Virus record (IMG/VR): IMGVR_UViG_3300034072_000758
Location: 1-64,000 of that record
Length of the DNA: 64,000 bases
Reading direction: 5' to 3' (one strand)
The notes beneath the pieces were generated by a model. It ran no database searches. It saw only the letters and a list, made by a program, of their open reading frames with translations, and was not told where the DNA came from. A program made the position numbers and the translations under genes. This document shows positions 7,338-57,549 of this stretch, piece after piece. The stretch's first letter is position 1. Each line of letters opens with the position of its first letter.

Positions 7338-7631
7338 TTATTTGTGAAGCGTGTAAGAAATAACCGACCCACTTGTGAAGCGTGGATCATATTGACTAAA
7401 AGAATGCGTAATGTGCGATTCACCATCAGCACTTACAACACTATACGGGGCGAGAGACGCAACCCACTTATCAGCCAATTCAATTTCTTCTGGGTCCATG
7501 TCTGAATCATCACCGTTGATCAGATACGAAGCCCAAGCTTCTGGACCATCTATAGTCTCGACTTCGATTTCTTCATTGAGGTTATCTTCGTTCAAAAGAC
7601 TTTCGTTAACAATATTCATGAAATCGCGCAT
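7338..7631 (-). CDS. Small acidic protein with CTS-like N-terminus
   Basis: MRDFMNIVNE-SLLNE-NLNE; WASYLINGD motif; TATAAATA upstream at 7665-7672 (minus). Confidence 0.7.
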   Translation of the reverse strand: MRDFMNIVNESLLNEDNLNEEIEVETIDGPEAWASYLINGDDSDMDPEEIELADKWVASLAPYSVVSADGESHITHSFSQYDPRFTSGSVISYTLHK

Positions 7632-7707: not shown

Positions 7708-8424
7708 ATGAAAGTAGCAATTATCTCAGCTTATTACAATGAAAGCCTAGATGTGCTACGGCGTTGTCACGATAGTGTTAAGACCCAAACACATACTGAC
7801 GTTACACATTACTTTGTGTCGGACGGAAACCCAAACACAGCACTCGATACTTGGGATTGCGTTCATATAAAATTACCTAATCATAATGATTACGGTGACA
7901 CGCCACGAGCGGTAGGAAGTTTGTCGGCAGTTGCCTTGAACTACGATGCCGTAGTTTTCTTGGATGCTGACAACTTCCTTACCCCGGACCACATCGAAAA
8001 AATGGTCTCTTATTCGAAGTTTACAGGGGCCGACATCGTTACAGCCACCCGCTTTCTTGTCGATATTGACGGGAAGACCTTGGGTGTCTGTAACGAGTCG
8101 GATGGGAATAACTTCAACGATACGAACTGCTATTTCATCACAAGTAAAGCGTTTGATGTTTTCCGTTATCTCGGCTTCAAGAGTAATAAACACGGGATAG
8201 TAGGAGATCGTATGTTCTGGAATGCTGTCAAACAGATGCCATTCTCCCGGTCCCATTTCTCTACACCAACGGTCTATTACACCACCACATTCGCATTCCA
8301 CTATCAAGTTCTCGGCCTGACGCCTCCCGACCACACTAAGGTCATTGTGCGCTTCTCAGACGAAGAACATCACCGCATGATCAGCTATCCAGAATATGTG
8401 AAGCTCACCAAGGGACAAAAATGA
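7708..8424 (+). CDS. Glycosyltransferase family 2
   Basis: IISAYYNE, VSDG and FLDAD (DxD) motifs. Confidence 0.88.
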   Translation: MKVAIISAYYNESLDVLRRCHDSVKTQTHTDVTHYFVSDGNPNTALDTWDCVHIKLPNHNDYGDTPRAVGSLSAVALNYDAVVFLDADNFLTPDHIEKMVSYSKFTGADIVTATRFLVDIDGKTLGVCNESDGNNFNDTNCYFITSKAFDVFRYLGFKSNKHGIVGDRMFWNAVKQMPFSRSHFSTPTVYYTTTFAFHYQVLGLTPPDHTKVIVRFSDEEHHRMISYPEYVKLTKGQK

Positions 8425-9290
8425 AATCCAATCTCATTATCGGCGTAATCAAAGGCTATGACTGGTCCAAGGTAAGCCTATGGGCCTTGAGCATCATTAC
8501 TAGCGGTTTCAAAGGCACAGCGGCAGTCATTCAATACTATGACCCCGATGGTATCGAGCGCGATGAAGAAGTAGCTAAGAATCTAAAATCTCTTGGTATC
8601 CAAGTCATCAATATGAGATTGGAAGGTCAAATCTTTTCCAGACGTTTCTATGACATTCATTCAGTATTGCGATCCAGACTGGACTCGTTCGATCATGTGA
8701 TTGCTACCGATGTTCGTGACGTTATGTTCCAGAGCGACCCTGCGGCATGGCTCTCTCAGAACCTCAAGAAGGGCATCTACGCAGCTACGGAAGGGCTTCG
8801 TTATCGAGACGAAGATTGGGGTAGAAGCAATCTCGCTCAATCTTTCGGCGCAGATGGTATGCGGATCATGGATGAATTGATTTACAACGCTGGGGTAATC
8901 AGCGGTAAAGCCGAAAGCATTTCTGATTTGTTCTACAACATTTATGTATTGTCGGAAATTGCCAATATGCCTTCGGGTGGTGGTGGTCCAGATCAGGCGG
9001 CGTACAACATGCTTCTCAACATGAAAGCATACCAGTCCGAAGCTCAATTCGGCAACCACGAGGATGGTTACGCCGCTCAATTGGGGACCACAGCCGATCC
9101 GTCCAAAATCGACCGCTTCCGTCCATTCTTAGTTGAACCGGAACCGATCATGGAAGATGGCGTGGTGAAAACAAGTACAGGTATTCCGTTCTGCGTTGTT
9201 CACCAATATGATCGTCACCCGGAATGGGATAAGATAATCAGAGAGAGGGTAAACAATGAATTACGCGATCTACGTGCTCGAAATAGCTAA
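8421..9290 (+). CDS. GT-A fold glycosyltransferase
   Basis: TDVRDVMFQ, YNAGV, DQAAYN and VHQYDR motifs. Confidence 0.8.
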   Translation: MKSNLIIGVIKGYDWSKVSLWALSIITSGFKGTAAVIQYYDPDGIERDEEVAKNLKSLGIQVINMRLEGQIFSRRFYDIHSVLRSRLDSFDHVIATDVRDVMFQSDPAAWLSQNLKKGIYAATEGLRYRDEDWGRSNLAQSFGADGMRIMDELIYNAGVISGKAESISDLFYNIYVLSEIANMPSGGGGPDQAAYNMLLNMKAYQSEAQFGNHEDGYAAQLGTTADPSKIDRFRPFLVEPEPIMEDGVVKTSTGIPFCVVHQYDRHPEWDKIIRERVNNELRDLRARNS

Positions 9291-9387
9291 GGTTGCATTT
9301 ATTGGAATGGCCGCTTTTATGGTCATCATCGGTGTATTATATTCACTCATGTGCGCGGCTAAAGTCATAGTCAAGCACAAAGAATGA
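9256..9387 (+). CDS. Small membrane protein (43 aa, not in ORF track)
   Basis: MNYAIYVLEIAKVAFIGMAAFMVIIGVLYSLMCAAK...; GAGGG SD; fills the gap. Confidence 0.55.
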   Translation: MNYAIYVLEIAKVAFIGMAAFMVIIGVLYSLMCAAKVIVKHKE

Positions 9388-10707
9388 TTACATCACGAAT
9401 ATTTTGCCTTCGCATTCATTTAAAGCCGCATTGAAATTATCTTCGAGTTCTTCCGCCATGTCGGTAAGAGCATTGTTGTAATATTCATAATCGTGCTCGT
9501 TACCACGAAAGCTATAATAACCATTTTGACCGGCCTTAAAATGCTTCGGAAGTGGATTGAATTTGATCTTACCAGTCAACATATATTGGGCTAATAGCTC
9601 AAGAGTAAATTCAAATTCATTTCTGAGCGCAGCTTCTCTTGCCGATCTCATAGTCCCAATGTTCTGAAAGAAGTATTTTAGGATTTTGTCAGTATTAGCT
9701 TTTTTCTGATGCTCACCATATCGTCCGCTATTGTTGTGTCTTTCTTCGCTATTACCTACCTTTACGCCATAGTTTTCTAAAATATTATTCATATATCGGA
9801 ATATTATGTTTCTAACTTCCGTGAAATGATAAACTTGTCTTTGGCTTTGACCGGTAGTGAAATTGTATTTGCCGTAGCGTGAAATTGCGTGACCGAAACG
9901 GTGAGCGATAATCCAAGCTGTCATAGGAACCTTTTCATCGCCCTTGTTGCTGTTGAACAAGATGTTGATAGCATTTGGTTGATACTGGAACTCGGACAAA
10001 GCTTTCGGCATGTTTTGTTCCAGCCACTCTTGATCGACCATACCAATTTCGCTATTTCGATTAGCTTCCGGCGAATTGACGAAATACATGTTGTAGTTAT
10101 GTGGTGTTTTAGCCCACTTCGCCTTGATCTTCTCAACGGCTTTTGGGTTATTCAAGAGCTTGCGTTCATTATCCTTATAAGAACTGTTCTTATCCCAATT
10201 ACCTACCTTCTGGAAATTGGCAATTGGCATTTCTTCAAGGGTCTCTTCACCTTCGGTCAATGAGGCCATCAGTTCCTTTACAGTAGGTTCATCCATATAC
10301 CCAAAGTGCGGCATTTTCAGTCCACGAATTTTAGTCTTCTCGGTGGCACCGTTGCTCATGAAAGCCTTGATACACTGGAAAGCGTCATCTGATTTTGGAC
10401 CCATACCATCAATCGGCGGAGCGAAATGAATCACGCCATTTCGGTATCGCCCACCAACACCTACCCAACCTCTGATCCAGCTATCATACCCGGCATTCGA
10501 TCCTGTTACTTCAAAATATTCCTCAGCATGAGACGCGCTAAGGGTCTTTGTACCGGCAGTACCTTCGTCGCCCAAAATGAAGCGTCCAGTCTTAGCATTG
10601 AACATAAAGCGACGATTTTTGATTTGTTTAAAATCAAAGCGACGAGTCTGGTGGGCCTTGTCAGATAGGCTGGTTTCGTTTTCATTAAGAATTTCAAAGT
10701 AACGCAT
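9388..10707 (-). CDS. Multidomain late protein with CTS-like N-terminus
   Basis: MRYFEILNE start; internal LTE/LEE linker; HRFGH motif; TAAATA 5 nt before ATG. Confidence 0.75.
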   Translation of the reverse strand: MRYFEILNENETSLSDKAHQTRRFDFKQIKNRRFMFNAKTGRFILGDEGTAGTKTLSASHAEEYFEVTGSNAGYDSWIRGWVGVGGRYRNGVIHFAPPIDGMGPKSDDAFQCIKAFMSNGATEKTKIRGLKMPHFGYMDEPTVKELMASLTEGEETLEEMPIANFQKVGNWDKNSSYKDNERKLLNNPKAVEKIKAKWAKTPHNYNMYFVNSPEANRNSEIGMVDQEWLEQNMPKALSEFQYQPNAINILFNSNKGDEKVPMTAWIIAHRFGHAISRYGKYNFTTGQSQRQVYHFTEVRNIIFRYMNNILENYGVKVGNSEERHNNSGRYGEHQKKANTDKILKYFFQNIGTMRSAREAALRNEFEFTLELLAQYMLTGKIKFNPLPKHFKAGQNGYYSFRGNEHDYEYYNNALTDMAEELEDNFNAALNECEGKIFVM

Positions 10708-10712
10708 AAGAT

Positions 10713-10728
10713 TATTTATTACTAAATA
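10713..10728. promoter_or_regulatory. Back-to-back T4-type late promoters (TAAATA)
   Basis: TAAATA at 10718-10713 (minus) and 10723-10728 (plus), each exactly 5 nt from an ATG. Confidence 0.75.
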
Positions 10729-10733
10729 CGTGT

Positions 10734-11306
10734 ATGAAGTTTAGAGAATTGTTAGAACCTAAGAAGAGAATTTATATTGCTCGAAAACTACTTAATGGTG
10801 AAGACATCATTGCTTGGGCTAAGGAAAACGGTCTAACATATTGTTTAAAACCGGAAGATTTTCACACAACAATTTTCTATACAAAGAACGCTATTGACTG
10901 GTATGATGTAGAACGCCAGAATGATACGGTGGTATGTAATACCGATGGGACAGATCGTCACATTACTTTGCTAGGTAAAACTGCGTTGTGTTTAGTATTC
11001 AAAAATGAAATACTTGATAATCGTCATTTCCAACTTCGACATGATGGCTTAATTTCAACGTATAACGACCATATTTTACACGTGACTCTCTCATACCGGG
11101 AGTATGATCAGCCCCTCAACATCATGACTGTTCCGGTATATAGTGGGCCTCTAATCTTTGGTCCTGAGTATGTTGATAATCCCGACGAAGATAACGTTGA
11201 ATTTGAAGAAATGTGTCTCGATGAAAGTGAAACACAGGATTGTGAACTTGGTCCCTATTATCAAAGCGACGAAGAATTAGAAGCTCAAGGTGTAAAAAAG
11301 CTCTAA
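10734..11306 (+). CDS. acb1: Anti-CBASS Acb1-like (T4 gp57B-like) 2H phosphoesterase
   Basis: Two HxT motifs (FHTTIFY, LHVTLSY); IYIARK, LCLVFKNEILDNRH and PLIFGPEY align by eye with T4 gp57B. Confidence 0.8.
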   Translation: MKFRELLEPKKRIYIARKLLNGEDIIAWAKENGLTYCLKPEDFHTTIFYTKNAIDWYDVERQNDTVVCNTDGTDRHITLLGKTALCLVFKNEILDNRHFQLRHDGLISTYNDHILHVTLSYREYDQPLNIMTVPVYSGPLIFGPEYVDNPDEDNVEFEEMCLDESETQDCELGPYYQSDEELEAQGVKKL

Positions 11307-11312
11307 TATAGA

Positions 11313-11340
11313 TTGACAATATACCGTCATATGTTATCGT
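11313..11340 (+). promoter_or_regulatory. Sigma70-type early promoter
   Basis: TTGACA...TG-T-TATCGT upstream of GGAG-acaaaat-ATG. Confidence 0.6.
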
Positions 11341-11370
11341 GAAATATATCAATATTCACGGAGACAAAAT

Positions 11371-11721
11371 ATGACCGGTCTGACTATTCTCGCTAAAACC
11401 ATCGTTGTAGCTTTCAAGGAAGGCCGCAAGCGTTATGAAGTAGCCCGCCCGGTCACGGCGACGGTCGCGGATGATGCCTCACTTCGCGCATCCACCATCA
11501 GCCTGATCTCGGCTGGACAAAACGGCAGCATGGTCAACTGGAACGTCCGCGAAGCTACTCTGGCCGAAGTTCTGGCCCTTGCCGCGCAGTCGGCTCGCAA
11601 TTTTCTACTGACGCTCGGCGAAGAAAACGGAAAGTTCACGGTCGAAGACGATGGTGAAGTGCTATTCATCACCGACACCGAAACCACCCGATCCGAGGTA
11701 TTGGCTAAGGTATTCAAGTAA
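11371..11721 (+). CDS. Early hypothetical protein
   Basis: Own promoter and SD. Confidence 0.7.
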   Translation: MTGLTILAKTIVVAFKEGRKRYEVARPVTATVADDASLRASTISLISAGQNGSMVNWNVREATLAEVLALAAQSARNFLLTLGEENGKFTVEDDGEVLFITDTETTRSEVLAKVFK

Positions 11722-12172
11722 GCAATAACCGCATCATCATCGTGGCATTGGTGATTTCTTCCCAAGATGCGTTGATCCTAGCGGTATATCCGGTCATAGA
11801 TTCTATTTTGACCCATCGTTTGTAAGGGAGAACACCACCGCGTTCTCCCTTTATTTCGTAATACCCCTCCCCCATTTCTTGAATTGAAAAACTAGACACG
11901 AGGTCAAATTTGATCTCGAACTTTACATGTTGGAACACAACGCTCAAATAGGCGTCTGAAACCGTGGCCTTACCCTTGTCGTCGTTCACAAATCTGTTTC
12001 CGCGCCCGTGTATCAAAGAAAACACGACCGTTTTACCGGCTTCATATTCCAATGATATAATATCATCGCATCGTGCTTCTGCCTGATTGTACAGAATAAA
12101 CCAGTCGAGCAACGGTAACCCACATTCTAATATTTGCTCAGTCCGGTCGTCGCTCATAGCATAATTCTCCAA
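11714..12172 (-). CDS. Hypothetical protein (true start probably a few codons downstream)
   Basis: TTGACC-17-TAAAAT promoter upstream; GGAG SD. Confidence 0.6.
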   Translation of the reverse strand: MENYAMSDDRTEQILECGLPLLDWFILYNQAEARCDDIISLEYEAGKTVVFSLIHGRGNRFVNDDKGKATVSDAYLSVVFQHVKFEIKFDLVSSFSIQEMGEGYYEIKGERGGVLPYKRWVKIESMTGYTARINASWEEITNATMMMRLLLT

Positions 12173-12250
12173 GAAAATAGATTTTACGACCAGAAAAGAA
12201 TCTGGTCAACACCTCAACATTAATTTCGACTCTCGCATCTTTGGTATGTT

Positions 12251-13354
12251 ATGGTTAACGCTATGATGCTAGATATTAACTACGTTTGGAATGTCTTGGT
12301 TGCCAATCTACCGAAATCCCGGTCAGGTGGCTTCATCAAGATTTGCTGTCCGATGTGTCCAACTATGGGTGAAACACCGGATACCAGATTCCGTTGCGGT
12401 ATTACCAGAAACACCGATGGTGGCTTTGGTATAAACTGTTTCAACTGTGGTTTCAAAGCAAAATATGTCATGGGTAACGGTCTTTCCAAGAATGTGAAAG
12501 ACTTCATGTACGCCATCAACATCCCCGACCGGGTGATGATGGAAGTGGGTTATATGGTCCTTCTCGCCCAACGCCATTACAATAAGGCGGATGGTATAGT
12601 CGCTGAAATAGGCAGCGTTGCTACAGAGTTTGCGAGTCTACCTAAGAACTCGTTACCTATTAAAGAGTGGAAGGCTGAGGGATGTGATGATCCTAATTTC
12701 TTGGCCGTCTGTAAATATCTGGAAGGACGGGGTGATTATATAGCTAACAGCTATAATTATCACTGGTCCCCAGAAACCTCGGCCAAAATCAATCGTCGTG
12801 TGATTATACCATTTTATGATTATGGAGATCGCGTGGCTGGTTGGACTGGACGACTGATTGATCCTTCAAAAACTGATCGATACCTAACCAAAGGATCGAA
12901 AGCGCACTTGTTCAACAATCATCTTCTCTATGACAAGGAGATCGAAACGCTCATTGTCAATGAAGGCCCGTTTGACGCGATTGCTACTAATGGGGTGGCT
13001 CTACACGGTTCATCTATCAACGACTTTATTGTCAGCATCTTGAACGACTGCGGTAAGCGCATTGTCATTGTCCCTGATGGCGATAAGGCCGGTAGCAAGC
13101 TGATCCCGGTCGCGCTTGAGAATGGTTGGTCAGTGGCCTTCCCTAAGCTCCAAGGCATCTACAAGAAGGATAACTGGTGGGAAGATGACGTAGATGACCC
13201 GGCCAAAGCATGTGCCAAATACGGGCATCTTTTCACGGTTAGATCGATCATCGAAACAGCTACGGATAGCTCGTTCACGATACACATGAAGAGTAAGTTT
13301 TTGGTCGAAAAAGAAGAACCAAAACCAACTAAAAAAGTAAGCGAAGTAAGGTAA
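12251..13354 (+). CDS. DNA primase (zinc-binding plus TOPRIM)
   Basis: CPMC...CFNC zinc ribbon; RVIIPF, EGPFDA and PDGD TOPRIM motifs; adjacent to helicase. Confidence 0.9.
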   Translation: MVNAMMLDINYVWNVLVANLPKSRSGGFIKICCPMCPTMGETPDTRFRCGITRNTDGGFGINCFNCGFKAKYVMGNGLSKNVKDFMYAINIPDRVMMEVGYMVLLAQRHYNKADGIVAEIGSVATEFASLPKNSLPIKEWKAEGCDDPNFLAVCKYLEGRGDYIANSYNYHWSPETSAKINRRVIIPFYDYGDRVAGWTGRLIDPSKTDRYLTKGSKAHLFNNHLLYDKEIETLIVNEGPFDAIATNGVALHGSSINDFIVSILNDCGKRIVIVPDGDKAGSKLIPVALENGWSVAFPKLQGIYKKDNWWEDDVDDPAKACAKYGHLFTVRSIIETATDSSFTIHMKSKFLVEKEEPKPTKKVSEVR

Positions 13355-14779: not shown

Positions 14780-15088
14780 ATGGAATTTAATAGCGAAATG
14801 CGCGATTATATGGCTATCGCGCAGTTATATTCTTGGGATTATATGGATGCTGTTCATTTTGAAAAAGAACAGTTGACTGAATCTGCGCAAGTGGAGACGG
14901 AAAACCCATCAGTAATCGGAGAATACGCTGTTGGTGAATTGAAGGATTTGGTTTTTAAACTCAGAGCATTTCAAGAATCTCAAAGTGGTGACTATGGCTA
15001 TGGCTTTGAAATGGGGATGCAACGAGCGGCTGATATGGTTGAAAATTTAATTCTAAGATTAAGTGAAGAGAACGATGGACAGAAGTAA
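14780..15088 (+). CDS. Late hypothetical protein, first gene of a probable virion operon
   Basis: TAAATA at 14769-14774, 5 nt before ATG 14780. Confidence 0.7.
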   Translation: MEFNSEMRDYMAIAQLYSWDYMDAVHFEKEQLTESAQVETENPSVIGEYAVGELKDLVFKLRAFQESQSGDYGYGFEMGMQRAADMVENLILRLSEENDGQK

Positions 15089-38999: not shown

Positions 39000-41900
39000 T
39001 TATGGAATGATAATGACGACCAGACCGTTTGCCGAAACAATACCGTTCCCGTTTCCAGTCACACCCATGTACGCACCACTTGCGGCAGCATTACTAATAT
39101 AGTCCACGTCTGATGTCATTGGTGGAACATAGCCCACACCAATCACGGTTGTTCCATTGCTGAGATATGGCGAGGCTATATAGGACGAGCCACCACCACC
39201 GCCAGAACCAGCCGATACTTGCGAACCAGAGCCAGAACCGCCTCCGCCTCCGCCGAAGTAGCCCCCACCACCGCCTCCGCCAGAACGACTTGAGATATTG
39301 ACGGCACCGTTACCACCATACAGCGCCCCACCCGGCGTTGGCGTAGCCCCAGCAGCCGTAGACGCTGTTCCCCCAGCCAACTGTGTGCCACCACCTCCTT
39401 GAAGTTGCTGACCGTTTCTGAATCCACCGGCAACGCCGGTTAAACCACCACCATTACCACCGTCTACGTCAATAGCACCACCACCACCAGCGGCAATAAT
39501 AATAGCATTAGCCTGTATTGGTGTGGAATTACTTATAAAGATACCAGACAGCCCGCCGCCCGATCCGGCGAAATAACCGGGACCGTAAGATGGGCCGCAG
39601 TATCCCCCACCACCAAAACCACCTTGGCGACCAAGTGAAAATGTGCCGGTGACCCCGCCGCCACCAACCCAAACGGTCATAGCTGTATTAGCAGTAACAG
39701 TCACAGTTCCATTTGCGAAACCGCCAACACCACCATGCCAGCCGCCGCCGCCACCACCCCAGAGCTTTGTTGGGAAGCTGAGGTTTTGATGAGCGCGAAG
39801 CTTCCATTCGCCCGCCGCATTCATGATTATTTTGCTGTTTGCTTTATATGTGGTAACAACACCAGTCGGGGACGTAACCGTCATCATATCAGCGGCAACA
39901 ACATTCGCAGTAAAGGTTCGGGTATTAGCACGACCGTCAATATCTTCAACGCGAGCGGTCAGTGTAAGAACAGTTCCGTTGGCATACAAGCCACTCTGAA
40001 CCGAACCACTAATGACGCCGTTTGAAAGAAGTGTTAGGTTATTAGGCCAAGAACCAACCGTACTATATGTCAATGGGAGGAAAGCCGCATTTGAGGTAGC
40101 CTGAATCTGAATATTTACCGGCTCATTTTCAACTAAATTTCCCAAATGACCAGCCGGTGTGATCCATTGTGGCGCAGGAGTGTAGAGAACTGTGAATGTG
40201 AACTCACGCTCAACCAAATGATAATCATCTAGCGCCCCTATGGTGAAGCTATAGACAGTATCGTTACCAACAAACTGTGTCACACCATCAAACGTGGCTG
40301 TATTTCCCGCAGCAGCATAGTTGGCCGTCAGGAACGGCGGTATGGTTGTTCCGGCTGACGGCGAATAATTGACTTGATGTCCATTAGGATCAGTCGCCAA
40401 CAATGTAAAGTTGACCGCTCTGTTTTCCAAGTATGTTCCGAGATTTGAGCCAGTCTGCCAAACAGGAGGCCAGTTTCTTCTAACCATAATAGTGAACGTC
40501 TGCTTTGTAAACTTAATACCAGTAGAGGCGTTCAATGTTACACTATACACGGTGTCCACAAATACTGGTGGCGAAACCCAAGTAAGCATACCGGAAATTG
40601 CGTCTATATGAACATCAACCATGTCTGTACTATCAATCGAATAATAGACCGGGAGACCGTTCGATGTAGCTACCATCGTTTTCATGAAAGCCGAGCTTTC
40701 CTGAACTTCACCGAGATAGGCGGCATTCTGCCATATTGGGGCCGAATTGAACTTTACTTTAAAAGTATAACGTTCCGATGCGCTTAGTACGCTGTCGTCC
40801 GCCGTAACATCAAGATAGAACTCTGTATCATTTTCTACCGCTGGAAATGTAACATTGGATATATATATTTGTGACAGACCATTCGCGTTGATGACGTTAC
40901 TGATGACAACCCAATCCGGGGAAGCAATATCCAAAGTCATGGTTGTGTTGTTTGGTTCAACGATATTGATTACTATTGGAGAATCGGTATCGCTATCCAA
41001 TTGAATCGTTTGTTCCCACGAATCAAAAATCGTGTATCCCGGTGTTTGGAATACAGGTGGTTGGTTCTGAATGACTTCGATCAAGAACGTGCTATTTACG
41101 ACCGCATTGCCGTCCGTAACCGAAATGATTGGAGAATAATTGGCGGTAACAGCCGAAACCGGGATTGTTCCGCTGATTTGTCCACCAGTAGATACGGTCG
41201 AGTCTGGTGGCCAAGAGCCGCCCGCGTTGGCATATACCAAGGTCTGAGACAGGTTTTGATCTGTGGCTTGAACTGTAGCTGAGAAACTATCACCACCAAA
41301 CACTTGAGCCAAAGTGACCGAGTTCGGGGTCTGCCAAACCGGCACATAATCTTCTTCAACATCAATGAAAAAATCACGTGTGGTGACATGATTACTATCG
41401 TCGGCCTGTACGGTAAACTCATAGCGCGTCAGGGAACCGTTGACCAGAGGTGCGGTTCCGCTGATACCTCCGGTAGTAGTATCGAATGTCAACGACGATG
41501 GGAAGTTACCACCAACAATCGAGTACACGACTGGATAGCGCTCGACATCGCCCGCCGACACTCCCGTAGCAACTGAATAGCGTTCAATCCATTCTCCTAA
41601 ATTCGGATTGGTATTGAAGTATGGATCAACGTCTTTGAGATTAAGCATAGAGAACGTGCGTTCTTCGCTTGTGGCCAAGTGATCGGAAACCGTCGCTTTG
41701 AATGTATAAACTGTATCGTTTTGTTCGAGCGGGAAGAAACCTTTGACTTGTCCTGTGATCAAATCCGAACGAGGATTGTCATACGGCTGGAATGACTTCC
41801 TAAACTTTGATACGCCGTTAGTGATGGTGAATGAATCAACTAACCCAAAAAGTTTATTTGTGCCACCGATGTCCGAACCCAAAGTGAATGAATTGCCGGT

Positions 41901-44900
41901 ATAGGTTACACGAGGATTAGTATATATTTCATCCACGATTTGATTGTTAATAACAAGATATGTATTCTTTTCAGACTTCGATAGAACAATCGAATTAGCC
42001 CCAGCTAATAATACTGGCGCAGATAGCGTAACTACTCCCTTAGATTCGAAAATCAATTCATTATTGACGCGCTTTAACTTAAAGCCATCAGCATCACCAT
42101 ATGTGAACAAGGTACAATCGGTAGCATCGTATGTCCCAACAACGATCTCTATTGTAAACTCTTCTTGAAGAGATACATCCCCAGAAACCCACAGATTGTT
42201 AAAGTTCAAAGCATAATTGCCATTACCTTGAGAAACGTAGCTCACAACCCCATGAGTAGTGAGCGTATTCGCGCCTGTCCCTTGGTTGTTTACATTATTA
42301 TTAAAATCGGCGTGATGTGTTATGTCGTAGAAGAAACGATCAGCCTCAATATTCGGCGGTGTAGATGGCAACATCCAAGTATCGTTTTTGGTGAACACAT
42401 ATTCGTCAATAACGCCGTGGAACGGATTATTACCCGCGACCGATCCAGCACCAATTACGGCGTTTGTTGTGCCACTGAATACTGGATATGTCGATACGAT
42501 TGTGCCGATGTACATACCGTCAATAGCCATGCTATAATTGGTATTCGAACCCGTCGCCCCCGGATTGTGATTGATGATCGAGACATGATACCATTCGCCA
42601 ACACGAATGATATTCGACATGATCTGAGACGGGCCATCGGTTAGAACAAAACGATCATTGGCGTAGAAACATTCCATGTTTCCACACTTGAAAAGGGTTT
42701 GAACTCCGCTATTTGATGTAGGTTTAACGAAACATTCTATACCGTAGTTCTCAAAACCTTGAACTCGCGTGACTTCGTGATAACCCCAAAGAGTTCCGTC
42801 CAAAATCGCCCCATTACCAAATTTACCACTGTCGAAATCAGCAGGAGTCAAAGCGCGCGACGGTGTAAGCGAACCTGTCGTAATCATATTGGCCGCAGGT
42901 AAATTCGGCGCATATACATCGACTTCTACACCGTTAAAATCACCGTCGAATGGGATATACTGATGAATGTATTCACCCTTATAAAGACCGAAAGCAATAT
43001 TCTCCGGGGAACCCGAACGATCTGTAAGAACTATCTTTGGTGTAAAGCCGGAACCATACACGCCATTCAAGTCATTGAATACCACACCAGTTTGAATGAC
43101 GTTGTTACCGTTGTTCTGGTAAAAATTACCCGTGCTTTGATCTATGGTGGTCCATGTTGGTGTGACGTTCTTGTAGACCGTGAACGTGAACTCTCTGTCT
43201 GTATAACGGATTGTGTTCGAAGCACGAATTGTAAATGTATACACAGTGTCTTCGTCAACCGTTTCAGCAATACCACTTAGCTTACCAGTAGACGACAGCG
43301 TGAAATTAGGCGGCAATACTCCACCCACAACGGTATAATTGATGCTTGGAGCATTACCAGCGCCAACCGCTTGAAGCTGTGTGGTGAAATACATATTCTG
43401 GACTCTTCCAAACGAACTCGGTCCCTGCCAGATTGGTGCTTGAAGGAAACGAGCGATCACTCGAAAAGACATAGGCGTCTTATAATAAAAACCCTCAGTG
43501 ATGCTTTCACTATGATCATACGCTTGAAGTGTAAATTCAATGATCTGATCTTGAGCAACTTGCGGGTATGTTCCGTAAATACGCCCAGCACCTTGATCTA
43601 TCATAATTCTGTTGCTATTAGATTCGTAAAGTATACTTGATGACTCTGAATAGAAGTATTCAACGATTTGACCATCAAGGTCCACAGCCTCAACGTATGG
43701 CTCGAATGCTGCGTTAGCGAAGGCGTATCCGATTGGTGTTTGCTCCCAACCGGACGCCAAAACAATTATGTTATCGATATGGTATGTGAATGGCTTTTCG
43801 GCTACGCCAGCCGGGTTTTGCGCTGTAACATAGAACTTATGTTCCGATGTAAAATACTCAGCATCATTGGTTGGATTTTTCTTAACAGACCCGGCTATGA
43901 TCGCCACGTTTGTCATCGGATCATCGAGAAGCATGGTGTAAATCTGATGATAAACCGGGGACTGCGTTGGATCGGCCAGTGTCGCATAATAGTCATCTTG
44001 GTGACCGAAGAAATCCAGACCTGACTTAGCCAATTCCGAAGAGGTATTGCTGTTCAGGAAATAGCTGGTCGCGTTTGACGCATATATCATTAGGGTCACG
44101 TCTTCGGCTAGACCGAAATGTCCAGCGGTAGTTCCCAAAACAGAAGGCGATTGCCACACTGGCGTAGAAACAGGCGATGGTCCCGGCGTAATCGGCGCGG
44201 CAGAATAATCACTACCCAATGTCGTATTATCTATAGTATCGCGCCAAACCGGCGCATTGTTATACTTGTTGGTTATCGAGAATGTTCTTACTACGCGATG
44301 ATTCGGAACTTCCACACCACCATTATCTACATCATAGATACCGATGTCGAATGTATAAGTTTCTTCCCAATTAGGAGAGTTGTTGGCGTCGTTAGGGAAC
44401 TTTCCAGAAATACCATTTCCGGTTAATATAAGCTCACTGAATACCGGAAGATTACCTCTATCTGCTATGTAGTAGACAAGACCTTGGTTAGTGTTCTTTG
44501 ACGTACCCACGAAGGTATGATTGAACTCGACCATACCCAAATGCGTACCCAAATTACCGGCTGGTGTGATCCACTCTGGCATCAAATCTTTTTCAATTGT
44601 GAAGAAATACTCTTGGCTTGTTGATAGAACACCATCGGTCGCATCGACCGTGAAGTAACAAGTTTCAGTATTCGCTCCCGGCGTTGTCAGATACCAAGCT
44701 TCGCCGCTAACAACACCGGAGAACGGATCAATTGTCGTGTTGATAGCCGAATTACTCAGTGTATAGATTATTGGTTTAAACTGAGGATCATGGGCTTCAA
44801 TCGTGAATGTGAAACTAAAGCCTTCTACGACATTACCCAAATTGATCGCTGGTGTATCAAAGATCGGTGGGGTATTGAGCCACGACACGAATTGATAATC

Positions 44901-46394
44901 TCGTGAAGACGTATGAACGCCATCAAAAGCTGTTACTGTAACGTTGGTAATGACATCTGCACCGTTATTTGCCGGGGGTAGCTTTCCTACAAACGTGCCG
45001 TCCGAGTAATCAAAGGTAATCTCGGATGGGAGAGGCGTGACGGTGTAGATCAATGGCTTACCATTCGGGTCTTGTGCGATAGGCTCTGGGATACCGACCA
45101 GCGTTGTGTTTCCCAAATCCTGAAACAAGACGGTGTTGCCATTGAATACTGGTGGTAAATCTTTTTCGTTTGTAATTAGAACAGCGAGGTCCGCCGATTT
45201 TATACCGTTCGTCGCCGAAATCGTAAAATCAATCGGGAAAAATTGTGGTTCTTCGGCATCAACCGGATATGGCGACATCGTGCCACTCAGTTCATTCGTG
45301 ACCGTGTTATAAACAATTTCTGGATAGTCTTCGAGGCCACTAACAGTGTAGGTATATGGGATCGGTGTATATGTAGACGAAACGATTTGTGTAGTCGTTA
45401 GTGTCGTGTTTTCCAGATATGTCCCCAGATCAAGCGCCCCACCGACTACACCATCAAAGGTTGGTATTTGAACATATTCAACTCTGATCTTGAACAGACG
45501 CGGGGTCGTATAGAGATCGGTTCTAGCACCAGCAATGACCGTGTAAGTCGTCGTATCGGGCACCATAGGGGCGATACCCGATGTATACCCGGTGGTGTTT
45601 TCGATTAGAATGCCATCTGGCAAAGAACCCGCCAGAATGACATATTCTATGGGTAGAGAACCCGGATCGGCAGCGAGTAATTGCGCGTCCCAGAAAAGTG
45701 TTTCGATAGCTGTATTACCTAGATTACCAGCCGGGGTAATCCATTTTGGCGCATACTCTGGTGGAACAACGGTGAGATAAAGCGCAAATTGTCTCGTTGC
45801 GGCAGAAGAGAGGTTCGATGCGGAAACGATGAATGTATAAATTTGATCTATTTCGACATTGATAGGAGTACCATAAATCTCTCCGGTATCCGTATTCAGG
45901 AACAAACCGGGTGGGAGACTTCCACCGACTAAGGTGTAAAATACCGGAAGATCGAGTTCATCTTCGGCCAAAAGATTATAGGTGAACGGCATATTGGTAT
46001 AAGCCATCGCATCCAAAATACCCGAAGGCGTGACCCATACAGGTGCGGGGACTTCCCCAACAACCATTCGTAATTGTTTTGTTATGCTGACCGAAGCGCT
46101 TGCGGCTTTAACAACGAACGTGTAAACACCGTCAGCACCAGTGATCGTGCCGGTGATTGTCCCACCCGGATTGACAGTCAAACCAGCCGGAAGAATACCA
46201 CTTTCAAAAGTATAAATGATTGGGAGACCGGTTGTTGTCTCCGCTTTCAGAGCTATATTCACGGTTTTAGACGGACGATACATGGAGCCATATGGCCCAA
46301 GCGTCTTTGTAGGAGATACCCACCAGATAGTTGGCGAACCTGATTTATTGAGTGTCAAGTTGCCACGCAACTTGAGTTCCGACAGTCTAAGCAT
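39000..46394 (-). CDS. Giant Ig-like repeat protein with LamG-like domains and Gly-rich C-terminus (fibre/adhesin)
   Basis: Many P-x-W-x-T...LG / YS...GxLP / GxISG / YTFxVxA repeats; WYHV and FHGVIDE LamG motifs; GGGG-rich C-terminal domain; TAAATA 4 nt before ATG. Confidence 0.85.
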   Translation of the reverse strand: MLRLSELKLRGNLTLNKSGSPTIWWVSPTKTLGPYGSMYRPSKTVNIALKAETTTGLPIIYTFESGILPAGLTVNPGGTITGTITGADGVYTFVVKAASASVSITKQLRMVVGEVPAPVWVTPSGILDAMAYTNMPFTYNLLAEDELDLPVFYTLVGGSLPPGLFLNTDTGEIYGTPINVEIDQIYTFIVSASNLSSAATRQFALYLTVVPPEYAPKWITPAGNLGNTAIETLFWDAQLLAADPGSLPIEYVILAGSLPDGILIENTTGYTSGIAPMVPDTTTYTVIAGARTDLYTTPRLFKIRVEYVQIPTFDGVVGGALDLGTYLENTTLTTTQIVSSTYTPIPYTYTVSGLEDYPEIVYNTVTNELSGTMSPYPVDAEEPQFFPIDFTISATNGIKSADLAVLITNEKDLPPVFNGNTVLFQDLGNTTLVGIPEPIAQDPNGKPLIYTVTPLPSEITFDYSDGTFVGKLPPANNGADVITNVTVTAFDGVHTSSRDYQFVSWLNTPPIFDTPAINLGNVVEGFSFTFTIEAHDPQFKPIIYTLSNSAINTTIDPFSGVVSGEAWYLTTPGANTETCYFTVDATDGVLSTSQEYFFTIEKDLMPEWITPAGNLGTHLGMVEFNHTFVGTSKNTNQGLVYYIADRGNLPVFSELILTGNGISGKFPNDANNSPNWEETYTFDIGIYDVDNGGVEVPNHRVVRTFSITNKYNNAPVWRDTIDNTTLGSDYSAAPITPGPSPVSTPVWQSPSVLGTTAGHFGLAEDVTLMIYASNATSYFLNSNTSSELAKSGLDFFGHQDDYYATLADPTQSPVYHQIYTMLLDDPMTNVAIIAGSVKKNPTNDAEYFTSEHKFYVTAQNPAGVAEKPFTYHIDNIIVLASGWEQTPIGYAFANAAFEPYVEAVDLDGQIVEYFYSESSSILYESNSNRIMIDQGAGRIYGTYPQVAQDQIIEFTLQAYDHSESITEGFYYKTPMSFRVIARFLQAPIWQGPSSFGRVQNMYFTTQLQAVGAGNAPSINYTVVGGVLPPNFTLSSTGKLSGIAETVDEDTVYTFTIRASNTIRYTDREFTFTVYKNVTPTWTTIDQSTGNFYQNNGNNVIQTGVVFNDLNGVYGSGFTPKIVLTDRSGSPENIAFGLYKGEYIHQYIPFDGDFNGVEVDVYAPNLPAANMITTGSLTPSRALTPADFDSGKFGNGAILDGTLWGYHEVTRVQGFENYGIECFVKPTSNSGVQTLFKCGNMECFYANDRFVLTDGPSQIMSNIIRVGEWYHVSIINHNPGATGSNTNYSMAIDGMYIGTIVSTYPVFSGTTNAVIGAGSVAGNNPFHGVIDEYVFTKNDTWMLPSTPPNIEADRFFYDITHHADFNNNVNNQGTGANTLTTHGVVSYVSQGNGNYALNFNNLWVSGDVSLQEEFTIEIVVGTYDATDCTLFTYGDADGFKLKRVNNELIFESKGVVTLSAPVLLAGANSIVLSKSEKNTYLVINNQIVDEIYTNPRVTYTGNSFTLGSDIGGTNKLFGLVDSFTITNGVSKFRKSFQPYDNPRSDLITGQVKGFFPLEQNDTVYTFKATVSDHLATSEERTFSMLNLKDVDPYFNTNPNLGEWIERYSVATGVSAGDVERYPVVYSIVGGNFPSSLTFDTTTGGISGTAPLVNGSLTRYEFTVQADDSNHVTTRDFFIDVEEDYVPVWQTPNSVTLAQVFGGDSFSATVQATDQNLSQTLVYANAGGSWPPDSTVSTGGQISGTIPVSAVTANYSPIISVTDGNAVVNSTFLIEVIQNQPPVFQTPGYTIFDSWEQTIQLDSDTDSPIVINIVEPNNTTMTLDIASPDWVVISNVINANGLSQIYISNVTFPAVENDTEFYLDVTADDSVLSASERYTFKVKFNSAPIWQNAAYLGEVQESSAFMKTMVATSNGLPVYYSIDSTDMVDVHIDAISGMLTWVSPPVFVDTVYSVTLNASTGIKFTKQTFTIMVRRNWPPVWQTGSNLGTYLENRAVNFTLLATDPNGHQVNYSPSAGTTIPPFLTANYAAAGNTATFDGVTQFVGNDTVYSFTIGALDDYHLVEREFTFTVLYTPAPQWITPAGHLGNLVENEPVNIQIQATSNAAFLPLTYSTVGSWPNNLTLLSNGVISGSVQSGLYANGTVLTLTARVEDIDGRANTRTFTANVVAADMMTVTSPTGVVTTYKANSKIIMNAAGEWKLRAHQNLSFPTKLWGGGGGGWHGGVGGFANGTVTVTANTAMTVWVGGGGVTGTFSLGRQGGFGGGGYCGPSYGPGYFAGSGGGLSGIFISNSTPIQANAIIIAAGGGGAIDVDGGNGGGLTGVAGGFRNGQQLQGGGGTQLAGGTASTAAGATPTPGGALYGGNGAVNISSRSGGGGGGGYFGGGGGGSGSGSQVSAGSGGGGGSSYIASPYLSNGTTVIGVGYVPPMTSDVDYISNAAASGAYMGVTGNGNGIVSANGLVVIIIP

Positions 46395-57081: not shown

Positions 57082-57549
57082 ATGCGTTACTATAATATCC
57101 TACAAGAAATGGCGTTAGATCGCGTATTTTATCATGGCACCAATCATGATTTTAACCAATTTGAAAAGACTAGAGGAACTGTGGCTAGTATATTTGGAAG
57201 CGAACAAGTTGATCGTCAAGGTTTCTTTTTTACGGATAATGTGGAGTTCGCCAAAAACTTTGGTAACAAAATCATCAAAGTCAAACTTAGAATGAACAAG
57301 CCATTCGATCTGTCAAACGGATTGAGTTCTACTATGACCGCCGAATTAGAACGCCACGGTATTTCTTTCAAATGGATGTTGAGCAATGAAGATTGGGAAA
57401 AATTCGACGGCGAGGAAGGAGAAATGTTCGTAAACGCCTTGAAAGCTCTTGGCTACGATAGTGCTATTATTCAAGAGCCGGATGATCACGGCCACGATCA
57501 GACCGCATATATAGTGTTCGATCCTTCCCAGATTAAAATCATTGGATGA
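57082..57549 (+). CDS. ADP-ribosyltransferase-like domain protein with CTS-like N-terminus
   Basis: FYHGT, GFFFTDN..FA, GYDS and YIVFDPSQIK resemble the ART-PolyVal-type domain; MRYYNILQE start. Confidence 0.7.
   Translation: MRYYNILQEMALDRVFYHGTNHDFNQFEKTRGTVASIFGSEQVDRQGFFFTDNVEFAKNFGNKIIKVKLRMNKPFDLSNGLSSTMTAELERHGISFKWMLSNEDWEKFDGEEGEMFVNALKALGYDSAIIQEPDDHGHDQTAYIVFDPSQIKIIG

Follow-up and report, generated by a model that had tools for sequence, protein, structure and literature searches.

An Acb1-family phosphodiesterase gene behind a late-promoter-like element in an uncultured jumbo phage: candidate head cargo against CBASS

Anti-CBASS nucleases (CBASS, antiphage signaling systems based on cyclic oligonucleotides) are usually thought of as made during infection. 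An open reading frame (ORF) for a protein of 190 aa in the uncultured virus record IMGVR_UViG_3300034072_000758, at positions 10734-11306, raises the question whether such an enzyme may also travel in the phage head and enter the next cell together with the DNA. The window analyzed here comprises the first 64 kb of that record (positions 1-64,000), and translations were made with genetic code 11 only. An earlier note, made from the letters of the window alone, had described the ORF product as an Acb1-like anti-CBASS phosphodiesterase with a late promoter and a packaging-type tag, either timed to late CBASS activation or delivered from the virion.

The ORF is real and encodes an Acb1-family enzyme with intact catalytic residues. 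We see about an even chance that this enzyme is made late from a leaderless mRNA, bears a tag of the capsid-targeting sequence (CTS) type, is loaded into the head and acts on CBASS signals. If it is packaged, a signal-degrading enzyme would be in the cell at the moment of DNA arrival, which would change the timing models for CBASS and related signaling defenses. Virion delivery of 2H domains is an idea already known for MuF and portal fusions, and the novelty here would lie in a free, tag-directed version of it. In a full-text search of limited literature, neither an Acb1 homologue with a CTS-type tag nor a megaphage in which tagged effectors form a leaderless late regulon was found to have been reported.

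The whole record (denoted G000 where its own coordinates are given) is complete, with 516,805 bp, direct terminal repeats and 45% GC. It encodes a T4-type portal, a major head protein and a Peptidase_S77 protease, and is the genome of a distant T4-superfamily jumbo phage. With the prohead protease as query, the nearest cultured relatives were Sinorhizobium phage Phosso (62%), Pseudomonas phage PA5oct (58%) and Agrobacterium phage Atu_ph07 (54%).

The Acb1 domain and its relatives

The assignment to the Acb1 family is based on profile, pairwise and structural comparisons. The protein matched Pfam PF23474 (Acb1) over residues 13-153 with 81.9 bits (cut-off 27, E 5e-23), and LigT-type Pfam models gave no match at E<=1. 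NCBIfam gave none at E<=0.01, either for this protein or for nine other proteins with the N-terminal tag described below. PHROG 755, which the protein also matched, bears the label 'RNA ligase'. In a pairwise BLASTP comparison with T4 gp57B, 108 aa could be aligned at 28% identity (E 2e-7). The alignment covered both HxT blocks, which bears out a likeness that the earlier note had seen by eye. An AlphaFold2 (AF2) model built on 60 homologues reached a predicted local distance difference test (pLDDT) score of 82 and replaced a single-sequence model with only 34. Structures were compared by VIA-align (Z) and Foldseek (E). The best solved neighbor was Acb1 7T26, with Z 14.8 and a root mean square deviation (rmsd) of 2.0 A over 131 of 137 residues; Acb1 7T27 gave Z 14.4 (rmsd range for both 2.0-2.2 A). 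The phosphodiesterase of Burkholderia phage BCSR5 was next (Z 13.6), and LigT-type enzymes ranked under both (Z 10.1, rmsd 4.0 A). Foldseek likewise gave E 1.4e-7 for Acb1 versus 4e-4 for LigT, and the top matches in BFVD, a set of predicted viral structures, were mostly annotated as Acb1. A closer affinity to LigT/ThpR-type enzymes, which the earlier note had named as the outcome that would speak against its assignment, was thus looked for, and Acb1 was the nearer family by profile and by structure.

T4 Acb1 is defined by the tetrad H44, T46, H113 and T115 and by the aromatic residues Y12, W74, F107 and W147 (PMC9117128). The corresponding H44, T46 and H116 do not vary across the 60-sequence alignment, in which T118 reaches at least 90% conservation. 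Two of the aromatics are kept, Y14 in place of T4 Y12 and Y110 in place of F107. W74 is absent from the whole head-associated clade to which the protein belongs (see below), with an invariant R75 nearby, and the lid Trp is retained by that clade as (E/D)(D/N)W.

The C-terminus is peculiar to this protein. Residues 148-190 contain 16 D/E versus 2 K/R, with an isoelectric point (pI) of 4.05 and a net charge of about -14, so that the acidic extension claimed before is real; its pLDDT in the AF2 model is about 50. Among the 76 loci examined no homologue carries such a tail. The tail ends in GVKKL, resembling the G[VI]KE of the clade. In Acb1 a short C-terminal lid, residues 145-152, closes over the ligand (Hobbs et al., 2022), and F157 or Y146 might stand in for its Trp.

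Relatives in cultured phages, found by tblastn, came from phages of Rhizobium, Pseudomonas (phiPSA1 group), Synechococcus and Pseudanabaena, where they form the C-terminal part of a portal or head protein or lie in an unnamed ORF. A word-based protein search returned two relatives only. Among solved structures the best sequence match was the portal of Pam3 (PDB 8HDS chain A, residues 470-611), whose C-terminal 2H domain is not discussed in the Pam3 structure paper. Fifty-eight representatives were taken from 76 IMG/VR loci: in 25 of them the domain is the C-terminal part of a portal-sized protein, in 23 it belongs to other fusions and in 10 it stands alone. The fusions scanned included Phage_portal_3+Acb1, portal+Acb1+Mu_F in one ORF, NUDIX+Acb1 and Acb1 with an XkdF protease. 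Several stand-alone relatives have short N-terminal extensions that end in LFE, LHE or INE directly ahead of a conserved LYVSR, and the contigs of two of them (L039, LFE; L069, LHE) also encode S77 proteases. In the tree the ORF product groups with the head-associated clade, apart from the T4-type proteins (SH-aLRT 96); the ingroup was gathered with patterns from that clade, and wider relationships were addressed by the unbiased tblastn ranking instead.

The closest sequence relatives are thus 2H domains fused to portal, MuF or XkdF proteins (Pam3 portal, phiPSA1, Rhizobium RHEph portals; 27-39% identity), which share R17, R75, G105 and the HxT motifs with the ORF product, as well as a presumed virion delivery of a nucleotide-signal hydrolase. 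According to a proposal of Iyer et al. (2022), MuF- and portal-fused 2H domains are packaged and injected to counter nucleotide signaling (PMC9503650). Unlike these, the ORF product stands alone and would associate with the head by a short tag of cleavable type, not by covalent fusion; the fusions are fixed at the portal in 12 copies, whereas this protein would lie free inside the head. With T4 gp57B and the Acb1 of Erwinia phage FBB1 (PF23474; 7T26, 7T27; Hobbs et al., 2022) it has in common the 2H fold, the HxT/HxT tetrad, the equivalents of Y12 and F107, a core of about 140 aa and late expression, which is here predicted from the promoter. It differs from them by an identity of only 22-28%, by I77 in place of W74, by the missing lid Trp, by a 43-aa acidic tail and an 8-aa CTS-like tag, and by its separate clade. 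The BCSR5 enzyme (9Q2G, 9Q2Y), on which no paper was found in the same limited full-text search, is also a 2H enzyme of phage origin and likewise has a mobile lid, but its identity is 14-16%.

Late-promoter-like element and N-terminal tags across the genome

The CTAAATA ahead of the ORF is one copy of an element, [ACT]TAAATA-N4/5-ATG, which precedes 63 ORFs genome-wide. The heptamer ATAAATA lies exactly 5 nt ahead of an ORF-opening ATG at 37 of its 115 sites and 4 nt ahead at another 8 of the 115, and this position does not look like chance; related heptamers showed the same distance lock in the matching register only. The T4 late promoter TATAAATA, a -10 element with no -35 partner, is located at -13..-6 (PMC1524935), and aCTAAATA is identical to it at 6 of 8 positions. 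A spacing of five nucleotides combined with the T4 geometry would place +1 on the A of the ATG, giving a leaderless mRNA. A Shine-Dalgarno (SD)-like motif precedes 1 of 47 late-element ORFs versus 282 of 713 others, as counted in a crude gene set. Seven of 10 scanned larger ORFs with the element match virion structural, tail-fiber or tail-collar families. The genome also encodes a gp55-type late sigma factor (G000 307850-308638, minus strand; phrog_12791 6e-76, phrog_234 7e-18). A good sigma-70-type promoter was looked for upstream of ORF 10734-11306 and none was found. For the jumbo phage CBB, late promoters of the form ATAAATA have been proposed (PMC5259590). The most economical reading is that the element is a T4-type, gp55-dependent late promoter yielding leaderless mRNAs with the predicted start, and the late promoter of the earlier note is supported.

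Within the window the element also precedes ORFs at 14780, 23516(-), 29992(-), 46394(-), 56304, 57574, 58890 and 60657. Three giant ORFs lie behind it: 39000-46394 (-) of the window, with 2464 aa and matches only to PHROGs of unknown function, at its C-terminus; G000 122151-129422 (-), with 2423 aa; and G000 450442-455763 (-), with 1773 aa, which matches virion structural families. Besides the pair to which ORF 10734-11306 belongs, three other divergent gene pairs have back-to-back elements in spacers of 21-28 bp; in two of these (G000 223536-225618 and 262878-262901) the spacer of 21-22 bp contains the palindromic double promoter TATTTATAAATA.

The second recurrent feature is the N-terminus. 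Eleven ORFs open with a tag of the family M[KR][YF]xE[IL][IL]xE, which is absent at other in-frame Met positions and of which MKFRELLE is the shortest example; MKFRELLEPKK, MRYFEILNE and MSNWYRNLVNLIE may illustrate the tag sequences of the genome. All 11 tagged ORFs lie behind a late-promoter-type motif (one of them a variant), and past the tag their products show no similarity, except within a set of three or four paralogues. Synonymous codons alternate in the tag (CGT/CGC, TAT/TAC, CTT/TTA/TTG), an indication that selection acts on the peptide. With a second family, M[ST][NH]WYRN[LI][IV]NL[ILM]E, and looser variants, the total rises to about 25, nearly all behind the late element. More generally, [IL]xE occurs in the first 16 aa of 20 of 47 late-type ORFs versus 73 of 713 others (p 5e-8). 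Tagged genes cluster, and the cluster to which ORF 10734-11306 belongs extends across both ends of the genome (508-516 kb and 7-11 kb). Those tagged proteins that have recognizable domains are effector-like: one ART-PolyVal match of 63 bits and three below threshold, two GNATs (one under the Pfam cut-off) and the Acb1-like enzyme. In two IMG/VR pattern scans, one for tag plus promoter and one for the tag alone, there were no matches.

Two other explanations of the tag were rejected. It is not part of the Acb1 fold, as the model aligns to 7T26 only from residue 11, and it is too short, too charged and insufficiently hydrophobic for a signal peptide.

The tag resembles the CTS of T4. In that phage the CTS is MKTYQEFIAE, with targeting determinants at residues 4 and 7 and processing determinants at residues 8 and 10, and the prohead protease gp21 cleaves after I/LxE (PMC8442874, PMC9026906, PMC12991175); targeting is independent of cleavage. 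MRYFEILNE can be aligned to the T4 CTS with one deletion. A prohead protease of the gp21 type (Peptidase_S77) is encoded at G000 323908-324354 (75 bits), and head proteins of the present phage start in a comparable manner: MNKLFE in the major head protein, MTILNE, MRSILEE and MIIE in scaffold-like proteins, and MSLLLRE in the protease. With IPI, IPII, IPIII and Alt of T4 the tagged proteins share a tag of 8-10 aa with an aromatic residue at position 3-4, a Glu, two hydrophobic residues and then xE, as well as late genes, a gp21-type protease and the use of one tag on diverse anti-defense or effector-like proteins, among them ADP-ribosyltransferases like Alt. They differ in the tag dialect (MRYFEILNE or MKFRELLE versus MKTYQEFIAE), in the acidic charge of the Acb1-like cargo and in the leaderless mRNAs, and their packaging is predicted. 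A tag of packaging type, as first noted from MKFRELLE, is therefore the description that we retain. Late promoter and [IL]xE-ended tag together would form a compact, testable rule for predicting which effectors an uncultured megaphage injects, most of them without assigned function so far.

To judge from a few sequences, Acb1 proteins may bear CTS-like N-termini more widely. In T4 the acb1 gene adjoins ipI, which encodes a CTS-bearing internal protein. T4 Acb1 itself (57B, L097:1492-1950) starts with MMEFKDFST, close to the MKTFKEFTST of the adjacent IPI (ipI, L104). The Acb1 homologue of the T4-like Aeromonas phage Ahp1_CNU-2021 (QIW87136.1, L098:1456-1929) starts with MKTFSQFCE, similarly to T4 IPI with its MKTFKEF. 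QIW87136.1 is the only ORF of Ahp1 that fits MKT[FY]x[QE]F; in T4 the same pattern picks IPI, IPII, IPIII and one small ORF.

Members of the second tag family were located at G000 141194, 255156, 258993, 259799, 261857(-), 262252(-), 498670(-) and 353464(-). They are small proteins, mostly annotated without function, with one sub-threshold ART-PolyVal match, and many cluster at 255-264 kb. Tag-like starts, MRDFMNIVNE and MRYYNILQEM, were also seen in the window at 7338-7631 (-) and 57082-57549 (+), where the canonical promoter spacing is absent.

Proposed timing and delivery, and competing explanations

For this gene we infer the following course, in which substrate, transcription start, packaging, cleavage and injection are all read from the genome. 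The product would be a metal-independent 2H phosphodiesterase, most likely cleaving 3'-5' bonds of the host's cyclic oligonucleotide immune signals. The gp55-like sigma factor of the phage would recognize CTAAATA, the gene would be transcribed on its own, and the mRNA would start at or next to the AUG and hence be leaderless. By its tag the protein would be docked into the prohead's scaffolding core, along with about 20-25 other tagged effector-like proteins, and the T4-type prohead protease may trim it after L-L-E. A first action could be exerted late in the producing cell, during the activity of the prohead protease, which is known to trigger CBASS, and a second one in the next cell, where the enzyme would arrive with the DNA before any phage gene expression. 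In T4, gp21 activates CBASS from about 14 min by cutting a loop of the CD-NTase (cGAS/DncV-like nucleotidyltransferase) at an I/LxE-type site (Hobbs and Kranzusch, PMC12991175), and the activity of Acb1 sets in at about 15 min (PMC9117128); where a phage has an S77 protease, an Acb1 of the late class would thus be timed to the trigger. Late timing and virion delivery, between which the earlier note had wavered, are not exclusive, and both fit. The prohead protease would then be both the trigger of CBASS and the likely processor of the countermeasure, a mechanistic tie between the two.

A farther-reaching proposal, which is possible but to be held tentatively, is that this megaphage runs its own dialect of T4 capsid targeting, by which at least 20 unrelated effectors, all from leaderless gp55-type late mRNAs, would be placed in the head for co-injection. 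These would include several ADP-ribosyltransferases, GNATs, a kinase-like protein and putative peptidases, with Acb1 as a pre-delivered anti-CBASS enzyme, and CTS-type tagging of Acb1 would perhaps be more general. The acidic tail, too, could take part in such a scheme. It holds L162-D-E164|S, a second possible protease site, and trimming of the C-terminus there, as in T4 Alt, is conceivable as speculation; the tail may be an autoinhibitory segment, removable by the protease, which replaces the substrate lid.

Several observations weigh against late production, packaging and action on CBASS signals. The tag is followed by Pro9, where the other tags continue with S, A, G, N, K, V or M, and because of a Pro at P1' cleavage of the tag is doubtful in this protein. 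The whole protein is acidic (pI 4.63; core alone 6.06). The internal proteins IPI-III of T4 are basic and DNA-associated, and T4 Alt is an example of an enzyme as cargo. The gene adjoins replication genes and is not located in the head module. Two of the four base-stacking aromatics are not conserved, T4 W74 being replaced by I77 and the lid residue W147, according to the alignment, by N154, and the 43-aa tail stands where Acb1 has its short Trp-bearing lid; for these reasons the substrate range may differ from that of T4 Acb1. The branch of the ORF product is long (2.6 substitutions per site versus a median of 0.3), and the tree does not settle its place inside the head-associated clade. The closest cultured relatives, Phosso and Atu_ph07, have neither the promoter arrangement nor the tag, so that no comparative support comes from kin, and the omics paper on PA5oct reports neither leaderless late genes nor propeptides. 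RNA runs yielded two short contigs, both in neighboring genes and too sparse for use.

Some of these points would suit a purely cytoplasmic role, in which a late Acb1 neutralizes the signals of CBASS triggered by head assembly and stays unpackaged, its N-terminal motif serving initiation on leaderless mRNA, protein stability or an interaction outside the capsid. In T4, Acb1 acts late and in the cytoplasm (PMC9117128), the Pro after the cleavage site and the acidity unlike that of T4 internal proteins fall into place, and tag and mRNA type are confounded, every tagged ORF being also of the leaderless type. However, roughly 35-40 of the 63 leaderless-type ORFs are untagged, including virion and tail-fiber proteins, and the tag is therefore not needed for leaderless translation. 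The synonymous variation of its codons, its protease motif, its residue-by-residue resemblance to the T4 CTS and the physical fusion of the domain's relatives to head proteins likewise speak for packaging, and we regard a role confined to the cytoplasm as unlikely, if plausible in itself. In another reading, [ACT]TAAATA-N5-ATG would be not a promoter but an AT-rich translation-initiation element on longer transcripts, silent on timing. Its fixed distance to the ATG is what a ribosome-binding element would show. This reading appears improbable: the motif agrees with the late -10 element of T4, the phage encodes a gp55 homologue, divergent spacers of 21-28 bp, that of ORF 10734-11306 included, leave no room for another promoter, an SD-like motif lies upstream of about 40% of the other ORFs, and the genes behind the element are rich in virion proteins.

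Another possibility concerns the substrate. A 2H enzyme of this kind could heal RNA ends as a LigT-like 2',3'-cyclic phosphodiesterase, or cleave the cyclic oligoadenylates of type III CRISPR, and have no part against CBASS. The 'RNA ligase' label of PHROG 755, the loss of W74 and of lid W147 with an acidic tail in the lid's place, and the long branch can be cited for it, and Iyer et al. name SMODS, cyclic-mononucleotide and CRISPR signaling among what 2H domains fused to head proteins may target (PMC9503650). But Acb1 is the best match by sequence profile and by structure, with LigT clearly weaker in Z and rmsd and unmatched in the Pfam and NCBIfam searches at the thresholds given above, and Y14 and Y110 are retained, so a substrate unrelated to CBASS seems rather unlikely. 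Packaging of a late-made anti-CBASS Acb1 keeps the even standing given to it at the outset.

The locus and its surroundings

The features of the locus are collected in Table 1. The ORF has no alternative start ahead of M131, and the spacer that separates it from the divergent gene 9388-10707 has 26 bp in total and holds both elements.

Table 1. Features of the ORF 10734-11306 locus, in window coordinates
Feature	Position	Strand	Remarks
ORF, 190 aa, Acb1-family 2H phosphodiesterase	10734..11306	+	ATG start
Late-promoter-like CTAAATA	10722..10728	+	5 nt upstream of the ATG of ORF 10734
Partner element ATAAATA, back to back	10713..10719	-	5 nt upstream of the ATG of divergent gene 9388-10707
N-terminal tag MKFRELLE, residues 1-8	10734..10757	+	Outside the Acb1 fold; CTS-like; ends L-L-E
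Acb1 domain, residues 13-153	10770..11192	+	Pfam PF23474, invariant residues, AF2 model
Catalytic motif H44-T-T46	10863-10871	+	HxT
Catalytic motif H116-V-T118	11079-11087	+	HxT
Acidic C-terminal extension, residues 148-190	11175..11303	+	Charge, low pLDDT
Divergent gene, 439 aa, consensus tag MRYFEILNE, same promoter type	9388..10707	-	

Downstream of the ORF lies a small ORF with a sigma-70-like promoter of its own (11313-11340) and a Shine-Dalgarno site, and genes for a primase and a DnaB helicase follow farther on. The product of the divergent gene has two paralogues, at G000 142551-143441 (-) and 514400-515656 (+), with a conserved W[IM]IAHR[FL]GH segment. This tagged family of three had no match in Pfam, PHROG or NCBIfam, and Atlas leads to zincin-like peptidase clusters were weak (0.83). 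Directly upstream of the two tagged genes, within 7708-9290, a family-2 glycosyltransferase gene (7708-8424) is followed by an ORF of 289 aa without a family match.

Megablast of the region against phages gave no match. For window positions 9300-12300 (3,001 letters), matches came from soil/subsurface and wastewater DNA runs. Near-identical DNA was detected in a soil run belonging to the study of the source itself (0.58 of the sampled words) and short pieces in wastewater runs from other studies (0.07-0.12 of the words); the phage or a close relative appears to occur beyond the source sample.

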